Source: Trichosphaerium sp. ATCC 40318
Lineage: Eukaryota; Protista; Tubulinea
DNA: 64,000 nt
Assembly (NCBI GenBank): GCA_038496445.1
Contig: JALMLS010000447.1
Location: forward strand, 62,001-126,000
Direction of reading: 5' to 3'
The position numbers and the translations under genes were made by a program. The notes below the pieces were generated by a model that was not told the origin of the DNA, did not search any database, and worked only from the letters and a program-made list of their open reading frames with translations. Below are positions 37,034-62,885 of the stretch, one piece after another (the stretch's first letter is position 1; each line of letters begins with the position of its first letter).

Positions 37034-39110
37034 ATGGGTGTGTGTTTGGCTACAAGCGCTACACCTCACGATATTGCTATTAACAAAGCTATGAGAAGAG
37101 ATAAAAAGGAGAGAGATAAAACAGTTAGGATACTGCTCTTAGGTAAACAAAAAAAAAAAATAAGCCCGAGTTTCGCTGTTTTTTTAATCAAAAACCGTTT
37201 ATGTTATTCCATAGTAACATTAAACATAAATACAATTTTACTACCTTTTTCTGGTCCTTTTTGACGTATTTTTTAAAAAATCAGATTATTAATTAAATTA
37301 TCACGTGATGTTGCTAAAAAGATGATATATTTTAGGTGCTGGTGATAGCGGAAAGTCTACTTTTCTGAAACAAATGAAATGCGCTCATGCTAATTTATCC
37401 TTGGCTGATTTTCAAACTTATAGGCGTATACTGAGGTACATTTATCATGTTGAACGTATTGTTTAATATTGCCGTTTTCTCGTAATAAAAGGAGGCGCCT
37501 CCGACGAAAAACCTATTCTTTATGGAGATTATTATCGTTGTTTTGAGAAATCCTTCTTGTTAACTGCTAACACGTGATTAGAGACAATTTAATTGACTCT
37601 GCCCGCGATCTATTTAGCGCAGCACAGAACGAGAATATAAAGCTATCAAAACCTACAAAGGTAAACCTCCGAAGCATGTTCAAAAAAAAAAATCCAAAAA
37701 AAAAAGTTAGCACTAGGCTTACGAGCTTTTTTAGAAAACATACACTACCATCCTTGCTGCGGATACAATGGACTGGACTGGAGATACAATAGAAGCTTTA
37801 GCTGCGTATTGGAAAGATCCGGGTATAAAGAAAGTCTGGAGAGAATATAGACTCGAGTATCACTTGCTATGGTGCACGGACTAGTACGTACTTTTTTTTT
37901 TTTTCTTCTTCAGGAAGTCGTTGTTTTTTGGTTGTCAGAAAATACTAATGTGAACTCTTTTTGATTTAGTTTGTTCAAGCATGTTGAAAGGATAGGAGCA
38001 AGTAATTTTAGACCAACAGAAGATGATATTTTTAGAGCGAGGTTGAAGACCACAGGTTGGTATTTAATTTTCCGGTCCACAAAAAAAAAAATCCCAAAGA
38101 GATACCATTTTGCTTGTTTTGGGTTTTTGTCGTTTGTTGGCGTCACTGACTCGATTTAGGTGTTAAAGAGACTACTATACAAATAAAGGGAATAAATATC
38201 TGCTTTATTGATGTTGGTGGCCAGAGGTCTGAGAGAAGAAAATGGTTGGGATGTTTTGATAATGTTGATGCTATTATTTATTTAGTCGCTTTGGATGAGT
38301 GTACGTCCAACCTTTTTCGTTCAATTTTTTTTCCTCTTTGGTAGCCAAAGCGAGATTGCTTCTTTCTTTCAAAAACCTATTGTAGTTAAAGAATTAACAC
38401 GTGCTGAGTGATGTTTTCGCGGTTTTTTTGTTCCGCTCCTCAAAATTTCATTTTCCTTCGTTTTTTGTCTTCTTTTTCCTGTACTCTCGCTTACTTAGAT
38501 CTCTCTTAGATAACATGTCAATAGAAGAAAACAATACTACAAACAGATTAGATGAGTCTTTACAACTATTAGAGCAAGTATCTGGATGTAAAGCTCTTAA
38601 CTCTGACAACGAAATTCCATTCATTATATTCTTAAATAAGTTCGACCTATTCAGAACAAAATCAGCTTATGTACCTCTTTCCGACTACTTCCCTGAGTAT
38701 AAAGGTAACTTTAACAACTACAAGGAAATATCGTATATTGACTATGCATCAAATAGGAGATCAAAAAGATTGGAGGAAGGGAGTTCGATTTATCGGTAAA
38801 AAAGTCCGTCAAAGTTTCAAAGGCGCCAAACTAGCAAATACCTATGTACGTCTTCCTTGACTCTTTTTTTTTCGAAGAAAAAACCAGGAACCACACCACG
38901 TGATTAATCAAAAATCATATTTTTGAATTATAGTCGCGTTTACTGATTTTTTCTGCTTAGGTCACGTGCGGTTTGGATACACGTAATTGTGCACGTGTTT
39001 TCAAGTCAATATATGATGAAATTTTATTGGATAATGTTTATGGCATTGCATCAATGTCAAGCTCTACGCGAGGATCTGTCAGTGACTCACCCTCAAGTAT
39101 AATTTTTTAA
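37034..39110 (+). CDS. Heterotrimeric G protein alpha subunit (canonical motifs intact)
   Basis: MGVC (acylation sites), ILLLGAGDSGKSTFLKQM, RARLKTTG, DVGGQRSERRKW, FLNKFD, VTCGLDT. Confidence 0.96.
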
Positions 39111-54699: not shown

Positions 54700-55190
54700 T
54701 ACAGCAAGATTTACCTGAATGATACGCTTACGTTACAAGTAAAGGTGTAAAAGCTCTTTCTGGAGTTCATGCTTTTACAAGGCTATATTTATCAGATATT
54801 GTGTTAAGCTCTTGTTGGTGTACAACTTTCTCAGAAAAACGTATCATTGCACTTACCGGCGTTAGTGAAATTCACCTTGCAGGAGTACCAGTAACAGATA
54901 AAGGAACACAAGCTCTCTCTGGTGTTCAAACAATTTATGCTAGTGGTTGTGAGGGCATAACCGATGAAGGAATTAAGAAACTTCCTTCTGTGCATATAAT
55001 AGCCATTGGTGGCACTCCATTTACACAAAAAGGTTGAGCTGAATCACTCAGTGGCGCTACCAATACTTAAACTCTTTTCTTTGTGCAAATTTTCCGAATT
55101 TACAGTTCACACCCACTGCACCATACTTTTTCAGCTCAGCCTCTGTCTCAATTACCTGGTACAAATTTGGAAGCATAAAGGTTAATAGTG
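54700..55190 (+). pseudogene. Decayed member of the LRR family
   Basis: VTDKGTQALSGVQTIYASGCEGITDEGIKKL flanked by stops and frameshifts, with no intact start. Confidence 0.65.
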
Positions 55191-55324
55191 TGCACTAATC
55201 TTCACGTGATTTATAGAGGCGTTCTTGTAGAGTCAAAAAAAAGTGACAGATGAGTTGGTCCAATGATTTCAATTTTCTTCTCACTTTTGGATCAATAAGC
55301 TTGTCTATTCTTCCGAGGCGACTA

Positions 55325-56992
55325 ATGATTCATGTTACACAGTCTGATATGGTGCTTAAAGTAATAGTACTAGGTGATTCCGGGCACGTAGAAAGTATTT
55401 TTAATTAAAACAAACAAAAACCATCATTTTTAGACTGTACATGTATATCACGTGACCGTAATTGCGGTTTTTTTAGTTAAGAATTTTTAACGTAAGGAAC
55501 TACACATAAAAGTGCTTACAATGGTTTAATTATAGCGTCGGGAAGACTAGTTTGATCCAAAGATTCGTTAAAGGAGAGTTTACAGAAAAGTACAAGGAGA
55601 CGATTGGAGCGGATTTTACTACTCAGGCTATAGCCGTAGGTGAAAAGTATAATAAAATAAGGCTACAGATATGGGATACAGGTTCGTTTAAACGTTCAGG
55701 TTTTTACGAAACGAAAAAAAAAACGTTTTTTGGCAAACACAAAATGACGACATAAGGAATCTTTCTTTGTTTTTTTTTTGTTTTGCTACGGATTCCCTTT
55801 TTCTGAACTTGCATTGTTCGTAGTACGGTTGAGAATGAACAAAAATCAATTGAGTTAATGGTTTTGTTTTGATAAAAACGTTACGTATCACGTGGGCGTA
55901 AACAAGATTTAACAAAACGCAAAATACTGCAGTATTGTTTTTTTTTTTTTTTGAAATTACTTGAGCGTTTTTGCAGTATGTGTACCACAATCTTCATTAT
56001 AGTAGTACCGCTATATCTCTCTTATTCAAATTTAATTATAATAATCATCTTTCAATCACGTGGTTCATTCACACTGGTTTTCAGACCGAAAAACACAAAA
56101 AAGTCACCTAATAAATATTTACCCATTTATTTAGCTGGTAAGTACGACCTTTTGAAATAAAGAGTCTCATGTTATAGGACGTATTTGATTTTTGAATTAA
56201 AGGACAAGAGAGATTTCAGTCCCTTGGAAGTATATTTTACAGAGGAGCAGATGCAGTTATACTTGTTTTTGATATAACAAGCCTATCGTCTTTCCAAAGG
56301 CAAGTCAAAAAAATCTCACCTTTTTTTATCACTCGTTTTTTCGCTAAGTTTTTGTTGAACTAGCTTAGATAGATGGCGTAAAGCTTTTCTACAACGTGCT
56401 GCACTTAAAAAAAATACAGTGTTTCCTTTCTTTATTGTTTCAAACAAGTCAGATTTGGCTAAACAGCAGCGGGTTCGTAATAAACTTTTTATTCTTTTCA
56501 CTCTTTTTTTTGGGTAATTTTTTTGCTTTCAGCAAGTATCAGAGAGGGAAATAAAAGCATGGCTAAAACAACATGGAATCAAGCGTGTATAGTACGTATA
56601 CTAAAATATTACAAAAGCAAGGACAAGTTTTTTTTACTGCTTCAAAAAAAAAACTGGAAAAAAATAAGAAAACCCCGAAAGTGTCTTGTTTGTTCTAGCG
56701 CTCCTTACATCAAATTGATTATGGCGAAATTTGCTATATGCTTATAACAACTTAGTAATTGCTCCGCCAAACTCGGAGAAGGTGTTACAGAAGTATTTGG
56801 AGACTTAGCACTCTCAGTACGTCAAAAACTCAGTTTCCTTCAGTTTTTTTTTTCTTAATGTTGCGCGTTTAGTGTTTTCTTGGGTTTGATGATGTCATTC
56901 AAGTTCAAGAAACATGTAAACCTGAACCTGTTGTACTAAGGGAAGACAGCAAAGATATTTTACCACAACAAACTAGGCGGTGTAACTGCTAA
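55325..56992 (+). CDS. Rab7-like small GTPase
   Basis: [10 protein letters not shown]|[39 protein letters not shown]-terminal CNC prenylation motif. The model needs two GC-AG introns and a 3-nt microexon. Confidence 0.9.
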
Positions 56993-57319
56993 AAGATGTA
57001 AATTGTGTAAAGAAAAAAAAAAGTTATAATGTATTAAGTTCAAATTGCCTTCACGTCTTATGGTTCGCTACTGCTTCAAAAACTCAGTGAATGTCTGTGC
57101 CCAAATTCTGGTACTCTTATTGAAATACGTAATTATAGGCTGAGATAGATACCTCGTGCTTGGCAACAAGAGGCACAAAAGAAAATGTTGTTGACATTGA
57201 AATAGTGCAAATTTCAATAGGTTGTTCTGAAAGCTTATGCATCCCTACAACCAGATTGACAAGCTTTACATAGGTTTTATTTGGTTACATGGAAAATCAG
57301 TGAAGTAAAGCAACATAGG

Positions 57320-58962
57320 TTACATAAACGGGTATATTGAGAGTTTATATTGTACAACCTTTTCCCATTCAAAAACTGTTTCGGGAAAAATCTCAATCTC
57401 AATTTTTGCTCTCATGTAGAAATAATCTGTAGTCTTCTTTTCAATGTAGTCAATAGCTTCTTTATAGTCTAGATTTATAAATGAGATCATCAAAAACACA
57501 GTTTAGCAACTAGAACTTTTTTATCATGTAGAAAAAACACGTGACATGAAAGGACAGTTGTTTTCAAAAGTTAAGGTTTGAACGACTTTAAAAACAATTG
57601 AAATCTGACTGACTCAGACTCATAGGTTCGTATACATAAGATTGTTTGCAACAAGTAATCCAAAAAAGACTCACCTTCAAAAAAAGGAACAGAGTGATTC
57701 CTATCATGGTTGTACTTGTTCCATTTTAATTTTTTCATATATTCTTTGTATTCTTGTAAACCTTCTAATACTATGATAATATCTTGTTCATACTTGTCTT
57801 TGTTATGCTCATATTCTCTAAGAAACAACTTGTTGAATTTGTTCTCAATAAAAACTACTTCATCATCTTCTTTGGTTGTTGGTATGTAATCCATTAATGA
57901 TACAAAAAACACATATTTGTCAATGTCACACATAGCAACATTCCTTGAACGGTGACTGTACCAGTCAGTTTTAAAATACTTTGAAATATCTATAATACTA
58001 TATAGGTCAGTTAGAAAGAATACATAAGATTTTTTGGGTGCTGTGAATGCAAAAGACTTACAATGATGGTCTATCCGAAATGTTTACTGAACACTCAAAT
58101 ATTCCGGTGGGTGATTGTTTGAGAATATTGTCATCTGTTCTTTTTTGCTGTTTACAACACATATCTAACAAGTACTGCTCTGTATTTGTGTTAACTCTGA
58201 GCATTCTTATGATAAACAAGTACGTACTTTGAGAGTCAATTGATGTGTTGTCACTACCAATGATACCAATGTGAAGTTTCCGATGTTTCTGTTTCCGTTT
58301 GTGTTTGGCCAAATATTGGTCAATTGTGTTGTTTGTGTTCAAACCAGACTTCACTAACTTTGTGAGACATCTTGCTTTCTTTGATACTTGCCATGTTGAT
58401 GATGAGATGGGGTATTCTATATAGGTCTTTATTAGTACTGATTTAATAATGAGAGCAGGAGAAATGGATGAAAAGAAGAAAGGGATGTACGCCAATAGTT
58501 GCGGTTATCTTTGAAGAAAGGTTTCAATCCTTGACTTATCTATCATCACGTGTTAGATTTTTAGTGTCACGTGATAAGTCTTACGATAGACACAGTGCAT
58601 TTGTGTATGTATTTAGATTCATTGCTAATAATGTGATGAAGCATACGACAAACAGAAGAAAGAGAGATCAAGTCGTATCCTTCAAGGTTGTCCAAAAACT
58701 CGAAAATTATTTCAGTTGGACAATCTACGAACCAACGTTTTAGAGTCACAGAAACTGACTTCAACGCGTAATTGGTACCTGTGAAATAGCATTTGGATGT
58801 ATTGGGCCTCGTTTTGGTGTAACGGCTTTGATGAGATGGTAAAACCAATTGAGGACCATGAATAAACGGGTCTTGCGTATGAACAGCGTATGATACTATC
58901 CTATTTGAAGTTTAAACAAGTTTTAGTTTAATACTCGTTTATCACCTTTCAAACGACTCCAT
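57320..58962 (-). CDS. F-box fused to a degenerate G-alpha GTPase domain, copy A
   Basis: F-box FVDCPTEIIFEFLDNLEGYDLISLSSVCRMLHHII; then IDQYL...LHIGIIG...TDDNILKQSPTGIFE...IIDIS...KYVFFVSLMDY...DIIIVL...DYKEAIDYIEKK, colinear with G-alpha. Confidence 0.72.
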
Positions 58963-59284
58963 CAAGATTTCACGGCATTGAAGTTGCCATAGCTTTTGTT
59001 TTAGTCTTTTTTTCTCCTTTACAGCTGTTAACTTTGATTAAAAATACCCACCAAGCTAGTACCTGTTCTAACGTTACTATCGTCTTTTTCATCTTGGACG
59101 TGCAAACACGTGGGACGTTACAGACTTGAAAAGATGATAGCTTAGCACAATTTGATGTTAAGGGAGGTTACAAGAAGTTAGTACACTAGTTAGATGTACA
59201 CCAGCCATTGGTAAGTTGCAAGTAGTAAGTTTTATTCAAAGGACGATACATTAGGAAGGTTACCACAGAGTAAATGTATTTGTA

Positions 59285-59641
59285 CTATATATTGATGCCA
59301 AGTGTTGTCCTCATCGATGGATTTGAAGGATTCTCATCTATTTGCATAAATTTTTTTCGAAGATTGTCAACACTAAAGTTGACAGCACGTGCTACAAGAT
59401 TTTTGTAATTTATGTTTTTATTGTTGCTTGACTTGTATTTATTAAACTTCTTTGGGTATGCTGTACATAGAATTAATTTCCATAGATAATTTGTTTGTGT
59501 TTGTTCATGAAGGTGTTTACAAGTTCTTGACAAAGATACAGTAACTGCTGGGGCTGAGAGATTACAACACTGGATTATTTTGTACAGGCACTCTGTTGGA
59601 AGGTTATTTATACTGTTTACATCTTCTGGTATTGCTGTCAC
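59285..59641 (-). CDS. Small F-box protein (start uncertain)
   Basis: INNLPTECLYKIIQCC...SLSRTCKHLHEQTQTNYLWKLI...NYKNL is an F-box with its downstream helix. Confidence 0.65.
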   Translation of the reverse strand: MTAIPEDVNSINNLPTECLYKIIQCCNLSAPAVTVSLSRTCKHLHEQTQTNYLWKLILCTAYPKKFNKYKSSNNKNINYKNLVARAVNFSVDNLRKKFMQIDENPSNPSMRTTLGINI

Positions 59642-59939
59642 GTTTTATGGCGTTAACCACAATTATTAAGGTAACTTTCGACAAAATTCACTGTTTTCAC
59701 GGAAGTAGGAAAGTTTAGTGATGTTAAACAACTGACTCGCATTCAAAGTAGTCGACTAGTTAACTAGTTAACTTGTTCTTGTTCTCGTTTACCATTGATC
59801 TGTTTCAATTGGCCATTGTAGTACACGTGTTTCACAATGGACATTAAGGAATACAGTCACCTTAAGCTTTCATATCACGTGGTGTAGCAGTAATCTTGAT
59901 AGCATTGGTTTACATACCACCTCCACACTCTTTCTACCG

Positions 59940-60632
59940 ATGAATACTTCAGAATCGTCTCCTTTTCGTATATTTCTCCTTCCAGTTGAGCTACAGCTAG
60001 ATATTATCGAATGGGACGCAGAAGTGTATATGAAATGGCCTGTTTTATCAAAACAGGCAGCAACAACCAGGTTTGATGATGACTTGAATAAACACGGAAA
60101 GTGGCTGAAACTAGCACCTACACAAGTTCATAATGAGTGTAAGGAATGTACAAGTGTCGTACAGTATTGGAAGCACGGTAAACAGGACGGCCTGTACAGG
60201 TATTTCAATGCCAATGGCCAGTTAATTTTGCAGTGTTATTACGTGAATAATAAGAAAGAAGGAGAGCAAAAAGAGTGGTATTATCATGGTAAATTAAGGA
60301 GACATTGTCATTTTGTTGATGATAAACTACAAGGAGAGTATAAAATATGGTTTGACAATGGTGTACTATGTACACGTGCAAATTATGTTGGAGATAAGCA
60401 AGAAGGTGAACAAACATGTTGGTTTGGTAATGGTGTATTGTTTGATCTATGTAACTATTGTGAGGGTAAACGGCATGGAGAGTATAAGAAGTGGTATAGA
60501 AATAGTCAGTTGGAAGAACATTGTCAGTATGTTCATGGTAAACGACATGGAGAGTATAAAAAGTGGTCTACTGAAGGTAGATTGCTTTATCATTATCACT
60601 ATGATCATGGCAAAAAACAAGTCAACAAATAA
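59940..60632 (+). CDS. Intronless F-box-like + MORN-variant (YwqK/MORN_2-like) repeat protein
   Basis: IFLLPVELQLDII (F-box-like) plus 24-aa repeats such as GKRHGEYKKWYRNSQLEEHCQYVH. Confidence 0.82.
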   Translation: MNTSESSPFRIFLLPVELQLDIIEWDAEVYMKWPVLSKQAATTRFDDDLNKHGKWLKLAPTQVHNECKECTSVVQYWKHGKQDGLYRYFNANGQLILQCYYVNNKKEGEQKEWYYHGKLRRHCHFVDDKLQGEYKIWFDNGVLCTRANYVGDKQEGEQTCWFGNGVLFDLCNYCEGKRHGEYKKWYRNSQLEEHCQYVHGKRHGEYKKWSTEGRLLYHYHYDHGKKQVNK

Positions 60633-61050
60633 ATGTTTATATCACAAAAACAGCCATTCACAAAAGGTGCAAACATAATTGCAGAAAAGAATTCTGCGTT
60701 AAACTTTTTTTTTGAGTTATAATGGCTAAGTTTTGCATAGTTTACTATCACAAGAATTGCCATCCATTGAAATACATTTTCTGTAATGACTTATCTTCAA
60801 GGTGGAGACTTTAGGGAATCTAAAAACCTTTCTTTTCAATCACGTGTTTTAAAACGGTTTGTTTAGGAGTTGCGTTTGAATATTACCACAGCAAACAGCG
60901 CTGATTATTTTTGGTATGATGGATCACCTGTAAGTCCTGTTGTGGCTAGATTGTATGTTGCTAATGTAATTGATTGACAACAATTGCCTACGCTTACCAA
61001 TGGCGTGGTAAATTAATTATAATGTGGTAGGTGTGTTGTTCTAATGTTTA

Positions 61051-62450
61051 TTAAATGCAAAATCCAATATGGGGTGTTAAGGCATAGTTTACTATTGCAA
61101 CAATTTTCGTCCATTGAAATACATTTTCCAATATGACTGATGCATTGGCATGTCTTTTCTTTATCTTTCTTTCAATGTACTTAATAGATTCCCTAAACTC
61201 TCCACCTTAAAGAAAGTTAGTCTTGAACCACAAACAACCAAATGTACCTTCAAAGTCAGGAAAGCAAGTGTTTAATGGAACTGTTTTGATGCTTTTCCTG
61301 AATTCCCTGATGTCCTCAAAGACAACAATGGTTTGCTTGGTTTTTATTGCTATGGCGTCTGAGATATATTGTAGTCTTTCATGAATGGGAAATACTCCAT
61401 CCGGTGTTGGTAAGTAATCCATCAATGACAAGAAGAAAACATATGCATCCCAATCAAAGAAGTCCCTGAATCGTTTTGTTGTGAGCTTGGGTGTAAACTT
61501 TGAAATAGCTGTAATGCTGCAATAGTTGTTAAATGGGTAGTAAGAAAAAAGGGAGAGAATTGTATATTAAAAAAGAACAGTACTGTAATGTGTTACTAAG
61601 AACTGGTTTGAAGCACTCAAAACATCCTTGTGGTTCTTCTTCTTGTTCCAATTTGTAATTCCCTAAATCTTTTGTCATTCAAAGTACTCTAACGACATGT
61701 TAAACAACATACTGTCAGGTGGCTCAAATGCTGTGTAATTATAACCAATGATACCAGCACGAATTACACGAACTCTTTGTGTAATATGAAGGTGTTGATC
61801 GATTGTTTTGTTTATTTTCAAACCAGACTTAAACAACCTTGTGAGACATCTCGCTTTCTTTGATAATTGCCATGTTGATGATGAGAAGGGGTGTTCTAAA
61901 TATTATTTAGAATGAGAGCAAGAGAAGTGGAAGTAAAGAAGTAAAGAAGAAAGGGATGTACGCCAATAGTTGCAGTTGTCTTTAAAAAAAGGTTTCAATC
62001 TTTCACTTGTTTGTAATTTTGTCTATTATCACGTGGTAAGAGTTTCGGTTATCACGTGTTTTCAAATCTTACGATGGACTCAATACATTTGTGTATGTAT
62101 TTAGATTCATTGCTAATAATTTGATGAAGCATACGACAAACAGAAGAAAGAGAGATCAAGTCATATCCTTCAAGGTTGTCCAAGAACTCGAAAATTATTT
62201 CAGTTGGACAATCTACAAACCAACGTTTTAGAGTCACAGAAACTGACTTCAACGCGTAATTGGTACCTGTGAAATAGCATTTGGATGTATTGGGCCTCGT
62301 TTTGGTGTAACGGCTTTGATGAGATGGTAAAACCAATTGAGGACCATGAATAAACGGGTCTCGTGTATGAACAGCGTATGATACTATCCTATTAGAAGTT
62401 TAAACAAGTTTTAGTTTAATACTCGTTTATCACCTTTCAAACGACTCCAT
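61051..62450 (-). CDS. F-box fused to a degenerate G-alpha GTPase domain, copy B
   Basis: Same F-box as copy A; then IRAGIIG...EPQGCFE...AYVFFLSLMDY...PIHERLQYI...TIVVFEDIREFRKSIKTVPLNTCFPDFEG|GEFRESIKYIERK. Confidence 0.75.
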
Positions 62451-62885
62451 CAATATTTCACGGCATTGAAGTTGCCATAGCTTTTGTTTTAGTCTGTTTT
62501 TCTCCTTTACAGCTGTTAACTTTGATCAAACATCGACGTTGTACCTGTTGTAACCTTGATATTCTCTTTTCCATCTTAAATACGCACGTGTGGATGTAAT
62601 AGTCCAATCTACAAACCCAGTTCTTTGAATGATGGACAAAGACTTACTGCGCTCACAAACCTGAAACTCTGTCATAAAATTTCGCATCATATGCGCTGCA
62701 GAAATGAGTGTCTGACATGACATTATTATGTGTAGTTAAGTATCATCCGGGTAACCACCCGAAGTACAAAGATAGCCAAATATTTGACTATTTTAAAGAA
62801 ACATAAATAGTGAATAAGTGTGCAAACAACACGTGATAAAATTATATTTATTTAGTATCGAGCAATTACAGCCAGCTACTACTCC

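Follow-up and report, generated by a model that had tools for sequence, protein, structure and literature searches.

Can the alpha subunit of a heterotrimeric G protein become part of an F-box protein? The question is raised by two tandem genes at positions 57320-62450 of a 64,000-nucleotide (nt) stretch from Trichosphaerium sp. ATCC 40318 (contig JALMLS010000447.1, positions 62,001 to 126,000 of the forward strand); the whole of this stretch, which is eukaryotic and has a G+C content of 38%, is called the window here. Both genes are on the minus strand, gene A (57320-58962) encoding 368 amino acids and gene B (61051-62450) encoding 341. A preliminary description, made from the letters alone, saw in them two spliced genes with an N-terminal F-box followed by a domain colinear with G-alpha. 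This view is upheld by Pfam matches to the F-box, joints in complementary DNA (cDNA), Smith-Waterman alignment, a profile search of the PDB and hhalign. A and B are a genuine, expressed and selectively maintained pair, and their architecture is well supported.

The gene models were built from public cDNA contigs aligned to positions 57300-62600. Run X2 comes from a close relative strain, its pieces being 90-99% identical to the window, and is recognised as cDNA because one loose end carries a SMART adaptor; run X1 is 99-100% identical to the window. The models are as follows.

58962-58946, 58900-58779, 58724-58585, 58539-58491, 58416-58228, 58179-58062, 57997-57675, 57468-57320 (stop included), minus strand, coding exons of gene A, open frame

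62450-62434, 62388-62267, 62212-62073 (F-box), 62022-61962, 61895-61713, 61662-61584, 61516-61248, 61205-61051 (stop included), minus strand, coding exons of gene B, open frame, joints in X2 cDNA contigs

Each gene has eight coding exons and seven GT..AG introns (42-206 nt), whose positions and phases are identical between A and B, and every cDNA joint has GT..AG ends on the minus strand. Five introns of gene A (57469-57674, 57998-58061, 58180-58227, 58417-58490 and 58540-58584) are defined by joints that all lie in one 928-nt X2 contig; for introns 1 and 2 of this gene, joints mapped on copy B, which is nearly identical, served as the guide. The joints of gene B define introns 61206-61247, 61517-61583, 61663-61712, 61896-61961, 62023-62072 and 62213-62266 in X2, two of them being seen also in X1. 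The first donor, at 58946 in A and 62434 in B, is set by two joints, each leading from the 5' end of one gene to the almost identical 5' end of the other. The start codon is probably the ATG at 58962 and 62450, respectively (MESFER...). A conserved upstream open reading frame of six codons (MATSMP-stop; 58970-58990 and 62458-62478, minus strand) is situated in another frame and stops a few bases upstream of this probable start. A model composed of open reading frames only is ruled out by the RNA joints, which move the first donor and reveal a mini-exon as well as introns of 54 nt before the F-box and, in A, of 48 nt (in frame).

The F-box and the G-alpha-like part belong to the same transcripts. 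In each gene, one X2 contig starts within the F-box exon, of which it covers the last 43 nt, and continues through a mini-exon of 49 nt (A) or 61 nt (B) and all G-alpha-like exons to the 3' end. The mini-exon of gene A is placed as follows.

58491..58539, minus strand, gene A mini-exon, 49 nt; joints 58539>58585 and 58416>58491 in the same X2 contig; supplies the phase for the exon-5 acceptor

With this spliced contig in each gene and the open frames of 368 and 341 codons, the F-box and a separate C-terminal domain are on the same polypeptide. Every peptide quoted in the preliminary description is found in the spliced models, and its expectation for the RNA junctions holds, a single contig in each gene carrying the G-alpha-like exons together with the end of the F-box exon; the cDNA contigs do not show the two halves as separate transcripts. 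Further upstream A and B are identical, which is why the contigs do not go beyond these 43 nt of the F-box exon. The depth of the common 5' contig (31.9) equals that of the A-specific (9.9) and B-specific (22.3) contigs taken together.

The F-box is found without difficulty. It is represented in gene A by the following exon.

58585..58724, minus strand, gene A F-box exon (CPTEIIFEFLDNLEGYDLISLSSVCRMLHHII...), PF00646 E=1.7e-6

The PF00646 scores are 28.1 bits in A (E=1.7e-6) and 30.0 bits in B (E=4.4e-7), the curated cut-off being 20.5. The PF12937 score is above its cut-off too (24.5 vs 24.3 in gene A).

The origin of the C-terminal domain was assessed mainly by comparison with a canonical G-alpha gene of the same window and with PDB chains. 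The comparator and the most G-alpha-like piece of the pair are the following.

37034..39110, plus strand, canonical G-alpha gene, nine exons, 365 amino acids; MGVC, GAGDSGKST, RARLKTTG, DVGGQ and NKFD intact; separate from the fusion genes

61248..61516, minus strand, gene B exon 7, the most G-alpha-like piece: DAYVFFLSLMDY ... IVVFEDIREF ... VPLNTCFPDFE; inside the Smith-Waterman match

In its exon 7 region the canonical gene shares 72% identity with a transcript fragment of Trichosphaerium sp. that carries PF00503; the donors of the gene are often GTACGT or GTAAAC. Alignment of B to the spliced canonical protein yields a Smith-Waterman score of 71, the scores of shuffled sequences being 31.5 +/- 4.6 (z=8.5; none of 3000 shuffles reaches 71; Gumbel estimate, about 1e-5). 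With blocks preserved in shuffling, z is 8, and the reversed sequence scores 31; the null as a whole is 31-33 +/- 5, with z=8-9. The match spans canonical residues 206-312, that is, the region from beta4 to alpha4, and a canonical G-alpha exon is the best match for B outside the family among the 69 stop-free stretches of at least 100 amino acids in the window. Further, A and B yield z=23 past the block where their DNA is still similar, and hence their C-terminal domains are homologous over the full length.

The database searches point the same way. With a two-sequence profile of exon 7 of A and B, the top PDB matches are G-alpha t/i chimeras (E=0.015 and 0.018, chain residues 222-290), and two further G-alpha chains are within the top ten. 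Exon 7 of gene B taken alone has G-alpha in all three top positions (E=0.08, 0.087 and 1.2), and neither search produced any Ras, Rab, Rho or Arf chain. The hhalign comparison of the A and B pair with the canonical protein and the Trichosphaerium fragment gives P=0.002 over 94 columns. In the ESM Atlas, the four nearest named clusters of gene B exon 7 are PF00503 G-alpha (0.84-0.87), followed by the Rag and Arf families; these language-model neighbours are support of an independent kind, at the level of a lead. Profiles of exons 5 and 8 have no match or chance matches only in the PDB. Exon 7 of gene A has no relevant phmmer match in the PDB and no usable match in the ESM Atlas.

One more feature is an intron. 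B and the canonical gene have a phase-1 intron in the same aligned glycine codon (FPDFE|G and FPEYK|G, respectively), and A has one at the paralogous position, in agreement with the preliminary description; from the intron densities, the chance of such a coincidence is estimated as roughly 1 in 20. For gene A, the N-terminal half of the domain is the informative one. When the helical domain is deleted in silico from the canonical sequence, z for A rises from 1.4 to 1.6-5.7 over 16 cut choices, and in the resulting alignment the alpha1 remnant is joined, RTDDNILKQSPTGIFE is set against RPTEDDIFRARLKTTGVKE, and FIIDI against CFIDV. Thus the N-terminal half has its support from A and the C-terminal half from B, and the two proteins are homologous throughout. 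Taken together, the comparisons support the derivation of the C-terminal domain of A and B from the Ras-like domain of a heterotrimeric G-alpha, and we infer that it has a Ras-like fold.

The exons of gene A show how much of G-alpha is left.

58228..58416, minus strand, gene A exon 5: conserved linker, basic alpha-N-like helix, beta1-like strand KLHIGIIG and P-loop remnant SDNTSIDSQ without GKS/T

58062..58179, minus strand, gene A exon 6: alpha1 remnant directly joined to the switch-I remnant (RTDDNILKQSPTGIFE), and beta2; cDNA joint 58179>58228, nothing inserted

57675..57997, minus strand, gene A exon 7: beta3 to the alpha-G equivalent; DVGGQ replaced by DISKY, NKxD by EGLQ

57320..57468, minus strand, gene A exon 8: C-terminal part YKEAIDYIEKK...VFEWEKVV..., entered via a phase-1 intron; joint 57468>57675

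Exon 5 is colinear with the canonical segment INKAMRRDKKERDKTVRILLLGAGDSGKST and exon 8 is aligned to DWRKGVRFIGKK; exon 5 alone has no PDB match. The P-loop GAGDSGKST is replaced by GSDNTSIDSQ in A and GYNYTAFEPPD in B, the switch-II DVGGQ by DISKY and AISKF, and the G4 motif NKFD by EGLQ and EDIR. The switch-I arginine is lost in both proteins and the threonine also in B, and no TCAT-like G5 motif is visible in either sequence. The P-loop, DVGGQ and NKxD are thus unrecognisable in A and B, just as the preliminary description had it, and because of the loss of the P-loop, the switch-II DxxGQ and NKxD the domain is very probably a nucleotide-free pseudoGTPase.

The helical domain is absent from the mRNA. 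In A about 13 residues and in B about 9 separate the alpha1 remnant from switch I, compared to about 115 in the canonical protein, and no further exon is possible at this site, because the cDNA joints leave no room for it. The preliminary description was correct as to the missing helical domain; it gave about 15-20 residues for the replacement. The N-terminal lipidation site (MGxxxS/C) is absent as well: the domain is internal, following about 115 residues that include the F-box, whereas the canonical protein starts with MGVC. The comparison thus supports describing the domain as a natural "mini-G-alpha".

The 48-nt stretch 58180-58227 of gene A, probably taken as coding in the preliminary description, is spliced out in the X2 cDNA. 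This intron, which separates exons 5 and 6, keeps the frame and contains no stop; its translation STYLFIIRMLRVNTNT resembles the alpha1 helix of G-alpha (KSTFLKQMK). It may be a former coding segment turned intron, in which case its retention would restore an alpha1-like stretch. The equivalent intron of gene B (50 nt) is out of frame.

The coding regions appear to be under selection. Over exons 5-8 of A and B, at least 10 synonymous and at least 13 non-synonymous codon changes distinguish the window from the X2 orthologues, with no indels among the differences listed. The proportion of changed synonymous sites (pS) is 0.036 and that of non-synonymous sites (pN) is 0.011, which gives a rough pN/pS of 0.31 (binomial P=0.007 against neutrality). 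A ratio of about 0.3 argues against A and B being decaying relics. At the 3' end of gene B (61051-61090, minus strand) the last dozen or so codons are strongly unlike those of the X2 orthologue: the loose end in X2 reads HAFRMGFCV-stop and the window NYALTPHIGFCI-stop, GFC(I/V) being common to both, with a conserved cysteine two residues from the end.

The similarity between A and B is distributed unevenly. It is highest in the 5' module.

58585..58962, minus strand, gene A 5' module, 95-100% identical to 62073-62450 of gene B, introns included

The identity is 100% in exon 1, 98% in intron 1, 98% in exon 2, 98% in intron 2 and 95% in exon 3. As the introns are as similar as the exons, this pattern indicates a probable gene-conversion tract or a recent duplication of the 5' part. 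The identity is 86-87% in exon 4 and the initial 100 nt of exon 5 (87% in the exon 5 part), and 67-76% in the flanking introns; this difference argues for purifying selection on the linker and the alpha-N-like helix. By the second half of exon 5 the identity is down to 56%, after which DNA similarity vanishes, and the G-alpha-like parts of the two proteins are only about 25-30% identical to each other.

Several points weigh against this reading of the pair. The link to the remaining part of the F-box exon rests on the additivity of depths and the common 5' contig, the gene-specific contigs reaching 43 nt into it. Against the full canonical G-alpha, A yields only z=1.4, and the N-terminal half of the domain is weakly supported, being not significant by itself. 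With the threshold set at E=10, the PF00503 model matches none of the exon pieces of A and B that were scanned. The AlphaFold models of the exon-7 fragments are unusable, with predicted local distance difference test (pLDDT) values of 41 (A) and 39 (B). Finally, the pN/pS ratio was calculated from 23 codon changes among the differences listed, taken from assembled contigs.

Relatives of the pair were sought at several distances. A tblastn search with A and B over the whole window found no further family member. Weak matches at 54.8-55.4 kb fall on leucine-rich-repeat (LRR) and Rab-like genes and are due to chance; at this place the window contains a Rab-like small GTPase gene (KVIVLGDSG..., ...WDT; 55250-56200, plus strand) with an adjoining LRR-like open reading frame (54801-55037), both unrelated to the family of A and B. 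An exhaustive phmmer search with exon 7 of gene A, the largest exon, among 1.84 billion protein representatives found no relative. Its single match, P0001, is a bacterial repeat protein and was rejected as a chance match. In metagenome contigs, neither related loci nor the splice-junction pattern were found. As far as the libraries searched go, the family is very divergent and lineage-specific.

What could such proteins do? F-boxes bind Skp1, and the domain C-terminal to the F-box selects substrates. In A and B, the C-terminal domain would bind substrates. Most likely, with moderate confidence, A and B are expressed members of a lineage-specific amoebozoan family of F-box proteins that act as substrate receptors of an SCF (Skp1-Cul1-Rbx1) ubiquitin ligase and bind by means of a pseudo-G-alpha module. 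In line with the established role of F-boxes, the F-box would dock on the Skp1 of the ligase, the pseudo-G-alpha domain would serve as the substrate-recognition module, and the conserved basic helix, the equivalent of alpha-N, would be a spacer that positions it. Across the family the binding domain would diversify, while gene conversion would keep the F-box module uniform. Former partners of G-alpha, that is, G-beta-gamma, receptors and RGS proteins, would be one possible set of substrates and no more. Families of F-box adaptors that expand usually combine a uniform F-box module and a C-terminal domain that diverges (PMC3719486, PMC8120010). A narrower version, in which the mini-G-alpha as an SCF substrate receptor either catches parts of the G-protein signalling system (activated receptors, free G-beta-gamma) for degradation or serves as a diversifying bait for pathogen effectors, is rather doubtful; if it is true, the G-alpha scaffold has become a general recognition module, a use that we found nowhere described.

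The best of the alternatives is that the nucleotide-free mini-G-alpha has kept the partner surfaces of G-alpha, so that activated receptors, G-beta-gamma, RGS proteins or effectors are brought to the SCF ligase and ubiquitinated, forming a feedback brake on G-protein signalling. The alpha-N-like helix, more conserved between A and B than the flanking introns, would fit this, as would the canonical G-alpha gene situated 18 kb away in the same window. The main contacts of G-alpha with G-beta and receptors are, however, switch II and the alpha5 tail, and these are among the most divergent parts across A, B and the canonical protein. Moreover, the identity of about 25-30% between the domains of A and B favours many targets over one conserved set of partners. 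Engineered mini-G proteins without the helical domain do still couple to receptors (PMC5398546), and yet a mimic of this kind remains unlikely; we rate it below a generic adaptor in view of the poor conservation of switch II and the alpha5 tail.

Another alternative is an arms race, where the pseudo-G-alpha mimics the host G-alpha and traps, for the proteasome, pathogen effectors or toxins directed at G-alpha, the family diversifying in a conflict with intracellular bacteria or giant viruses. The fast divergence of the binding domain next to a uniform F-box could be explained in this way, and the locus does contain a local cluster of F-box genes, two more of which are situated between A and B.

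59285-59641, minus strand, F-box-only open reading frame, 118 amino acids, PF12937 E=4.3e-6

59940-60632, plus strand, MORN-repeat gene, intronless, 230 amino acids, MORN_2 E=4e-19; N-terminus F-box-like (LPVELQLDIIEW)

No X2 cDNA contig covers the first of these; the MORN gene is covered by an X2 cDNA contig from end to end, with a 3-nt insertion relative to the window at 60060. Known toxins that modify G-alpha attack the switch-I arginine and the switch-II glutamine; both residues are absent here, so that the copies would be poor mimics of those very sites. The pN/pS of about 0.3 between the strains is evidence of purifying, not positive, selection on average, and no link to a pathogen was observed. 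Even though a link with positive selection is on record for the large fast-evolving F-box families of nematodes and plants (PMC8120010, PMC3719486), we consider a bait improbable.

Similarly improbable is that the F-box does not serve the capture of substrates, but governs the turnover or location of the pseudo-G-alpha itself, or that Skp1 is bound outside a cullin ligase. A precedent is TbFRP, the FYVE/F-box/Ras-like GTPase of Euglenozoa, whose F-box the authors tie to rapid turnover of the GTPase protein itself (PMC3593210). However, a pseudoGTPase lacking the switch function has no obvious activity that would need control, and the sequence does not discriminate between these possibilities.

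It is very improbable that A and B are expressed relics, that is, duplicated F-box/G-alpha fusions decaying with no function of their own. The loss of all catalytic motifs, the lack of a detectable relative among the 1.84 billion representatives and the extreme divergence of the paralogues could be expected of such relics. On the other hand, both the paralogues and the orthologues from the second strain are spliced correctly, with open frames and introns at identical positions, no indels are among the differences listed for either coding region, and pN/pS (0.31, P=0.007) differs from neutrality.

Finally, an origin of the C-terminal domain other than from G-alpha, either chance resemblance or another P-loop GTPase, would agree with the failure of the Pfam G-alpha model and with the insignificant z=1.4 of A alone against full-length G-alpha, but it is hardly credible given that independent methods all converge on G-alpha and the same region, that the match includes the G-alpha-specific segment VPLxxxFPxY(K/E)G, with the common intron in B, and that the PDB searches produced no small GTPase.

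A short palindrome is overrepresented in the window. There are 14 occurrences of TCACGTGA (for instance, at 37301, 55202, 58567 and 63652) compared to 1.2 expected, and none of 100 shuffles reaches 14. CACGTG stands directly upstream of several genes and also within intron 3 of both A and B; this palindrome is probably a regulatory motif of the organism.

The substrate-receptor reading, which we prefer, bears on the general understanding of G-alpha, one of the best-studied signalling proteins, which is seen as a free-standing switch defined by the helical domain and the nucleotide pocket. A and B suggest that G-alpha can be cut down to the Ras-like core, apparently lose nucleotide binding, gain an F-box and stay under selection in several copies. 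If the partners of G proteins are still recognised by the domain, G-protein signalling would have a new feedback route and the mini-G tools a natural counterpart; with other targets, the domain would be a new recognition scaffold for SCF ligases. Domain databases label proteins of this type as "F-box only", and hence architecture searches miss them; in particular, a search for PF00646 together with PF00503 would miss A and B because the Pfam model of G-alpha does not detect them. In the literature we found neither an F-box/G-alpha fusion, in accordance with the preliminary description, which knew of none, nor a natural G-alpha without the helical domain, the survey by Anantharaman et al. 2011 being outside the coverage of this search.

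Among the known systems, G-alpha itself (PF00503) is the closest to the C-terminal domain. The two share the colinear basic alpha-N helix, beta1, the switch-I TxGI remnant and beta3 (with the aspartate kept in A), followed by the beta4 block hhhhhSLxDY, by beta5 and by the VPLxxxFPxxxG segment, where B shares the phase-1 intron. The similarity is significant for the region from beta4 to alpha4. Unlike G-alpha, A and B have no helical domain, no G1, G3 or G4 motif, no switch-I arginine and no N-terminal lipidation; they carry an F-box in front and are invisible to Pfam.

Engineered mini-G proteins keep the nucleotide-binding motifs and the receptor-binding alpha5 tail. What they have in common with A and B is the GTPase domain of G-alpha without the helical domain (PMC5398546); but they are man-made, whereas A and B occur in nature as fusions with an F-box, their nucleotide motifs are lost and their C-termini diverge.

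The principle of an F-box/GTPase fusion is not new. RhoBTB, like A and B, combines an atypical GTPase domain with an adaptor of a cullin ligase, but of the BTB/Cul3 and Rho type rather than F-box/Cul1 and G-alpha. Fusions of an F-box to small GTPases are already known, namely TbFRP (PMC3593210) and the lineage-specific ARF-family GTPases fused to F-box or BTB domains (10.1101/2020.10.31.363457). They resemble A and B in having an F-box adaptor N-terminal to a domain of the GTPase fold and in being specific to protist lineages, and differ in that their GTPase domains are those of small GTPases, not derived from G-alpha; TbFRP, in addition, has a FYVE domain. The large F-box families of plants and nematodes (PMC3719486, PMC8120010, PMC8665587) also have a conserved F-box, a fast-diverging C-terminal recognition domain and tandem or clustered copies. 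However, their C-terminal domains are FBA, FTH, kelch, LRR and others, never G-alpha-derived. What sets A and B apart among fusions of an F-box with a GTPase-fold domain is the derivation of this domain from G-alpha, very probably as a pseudoGTPase; the architecture is well supported.

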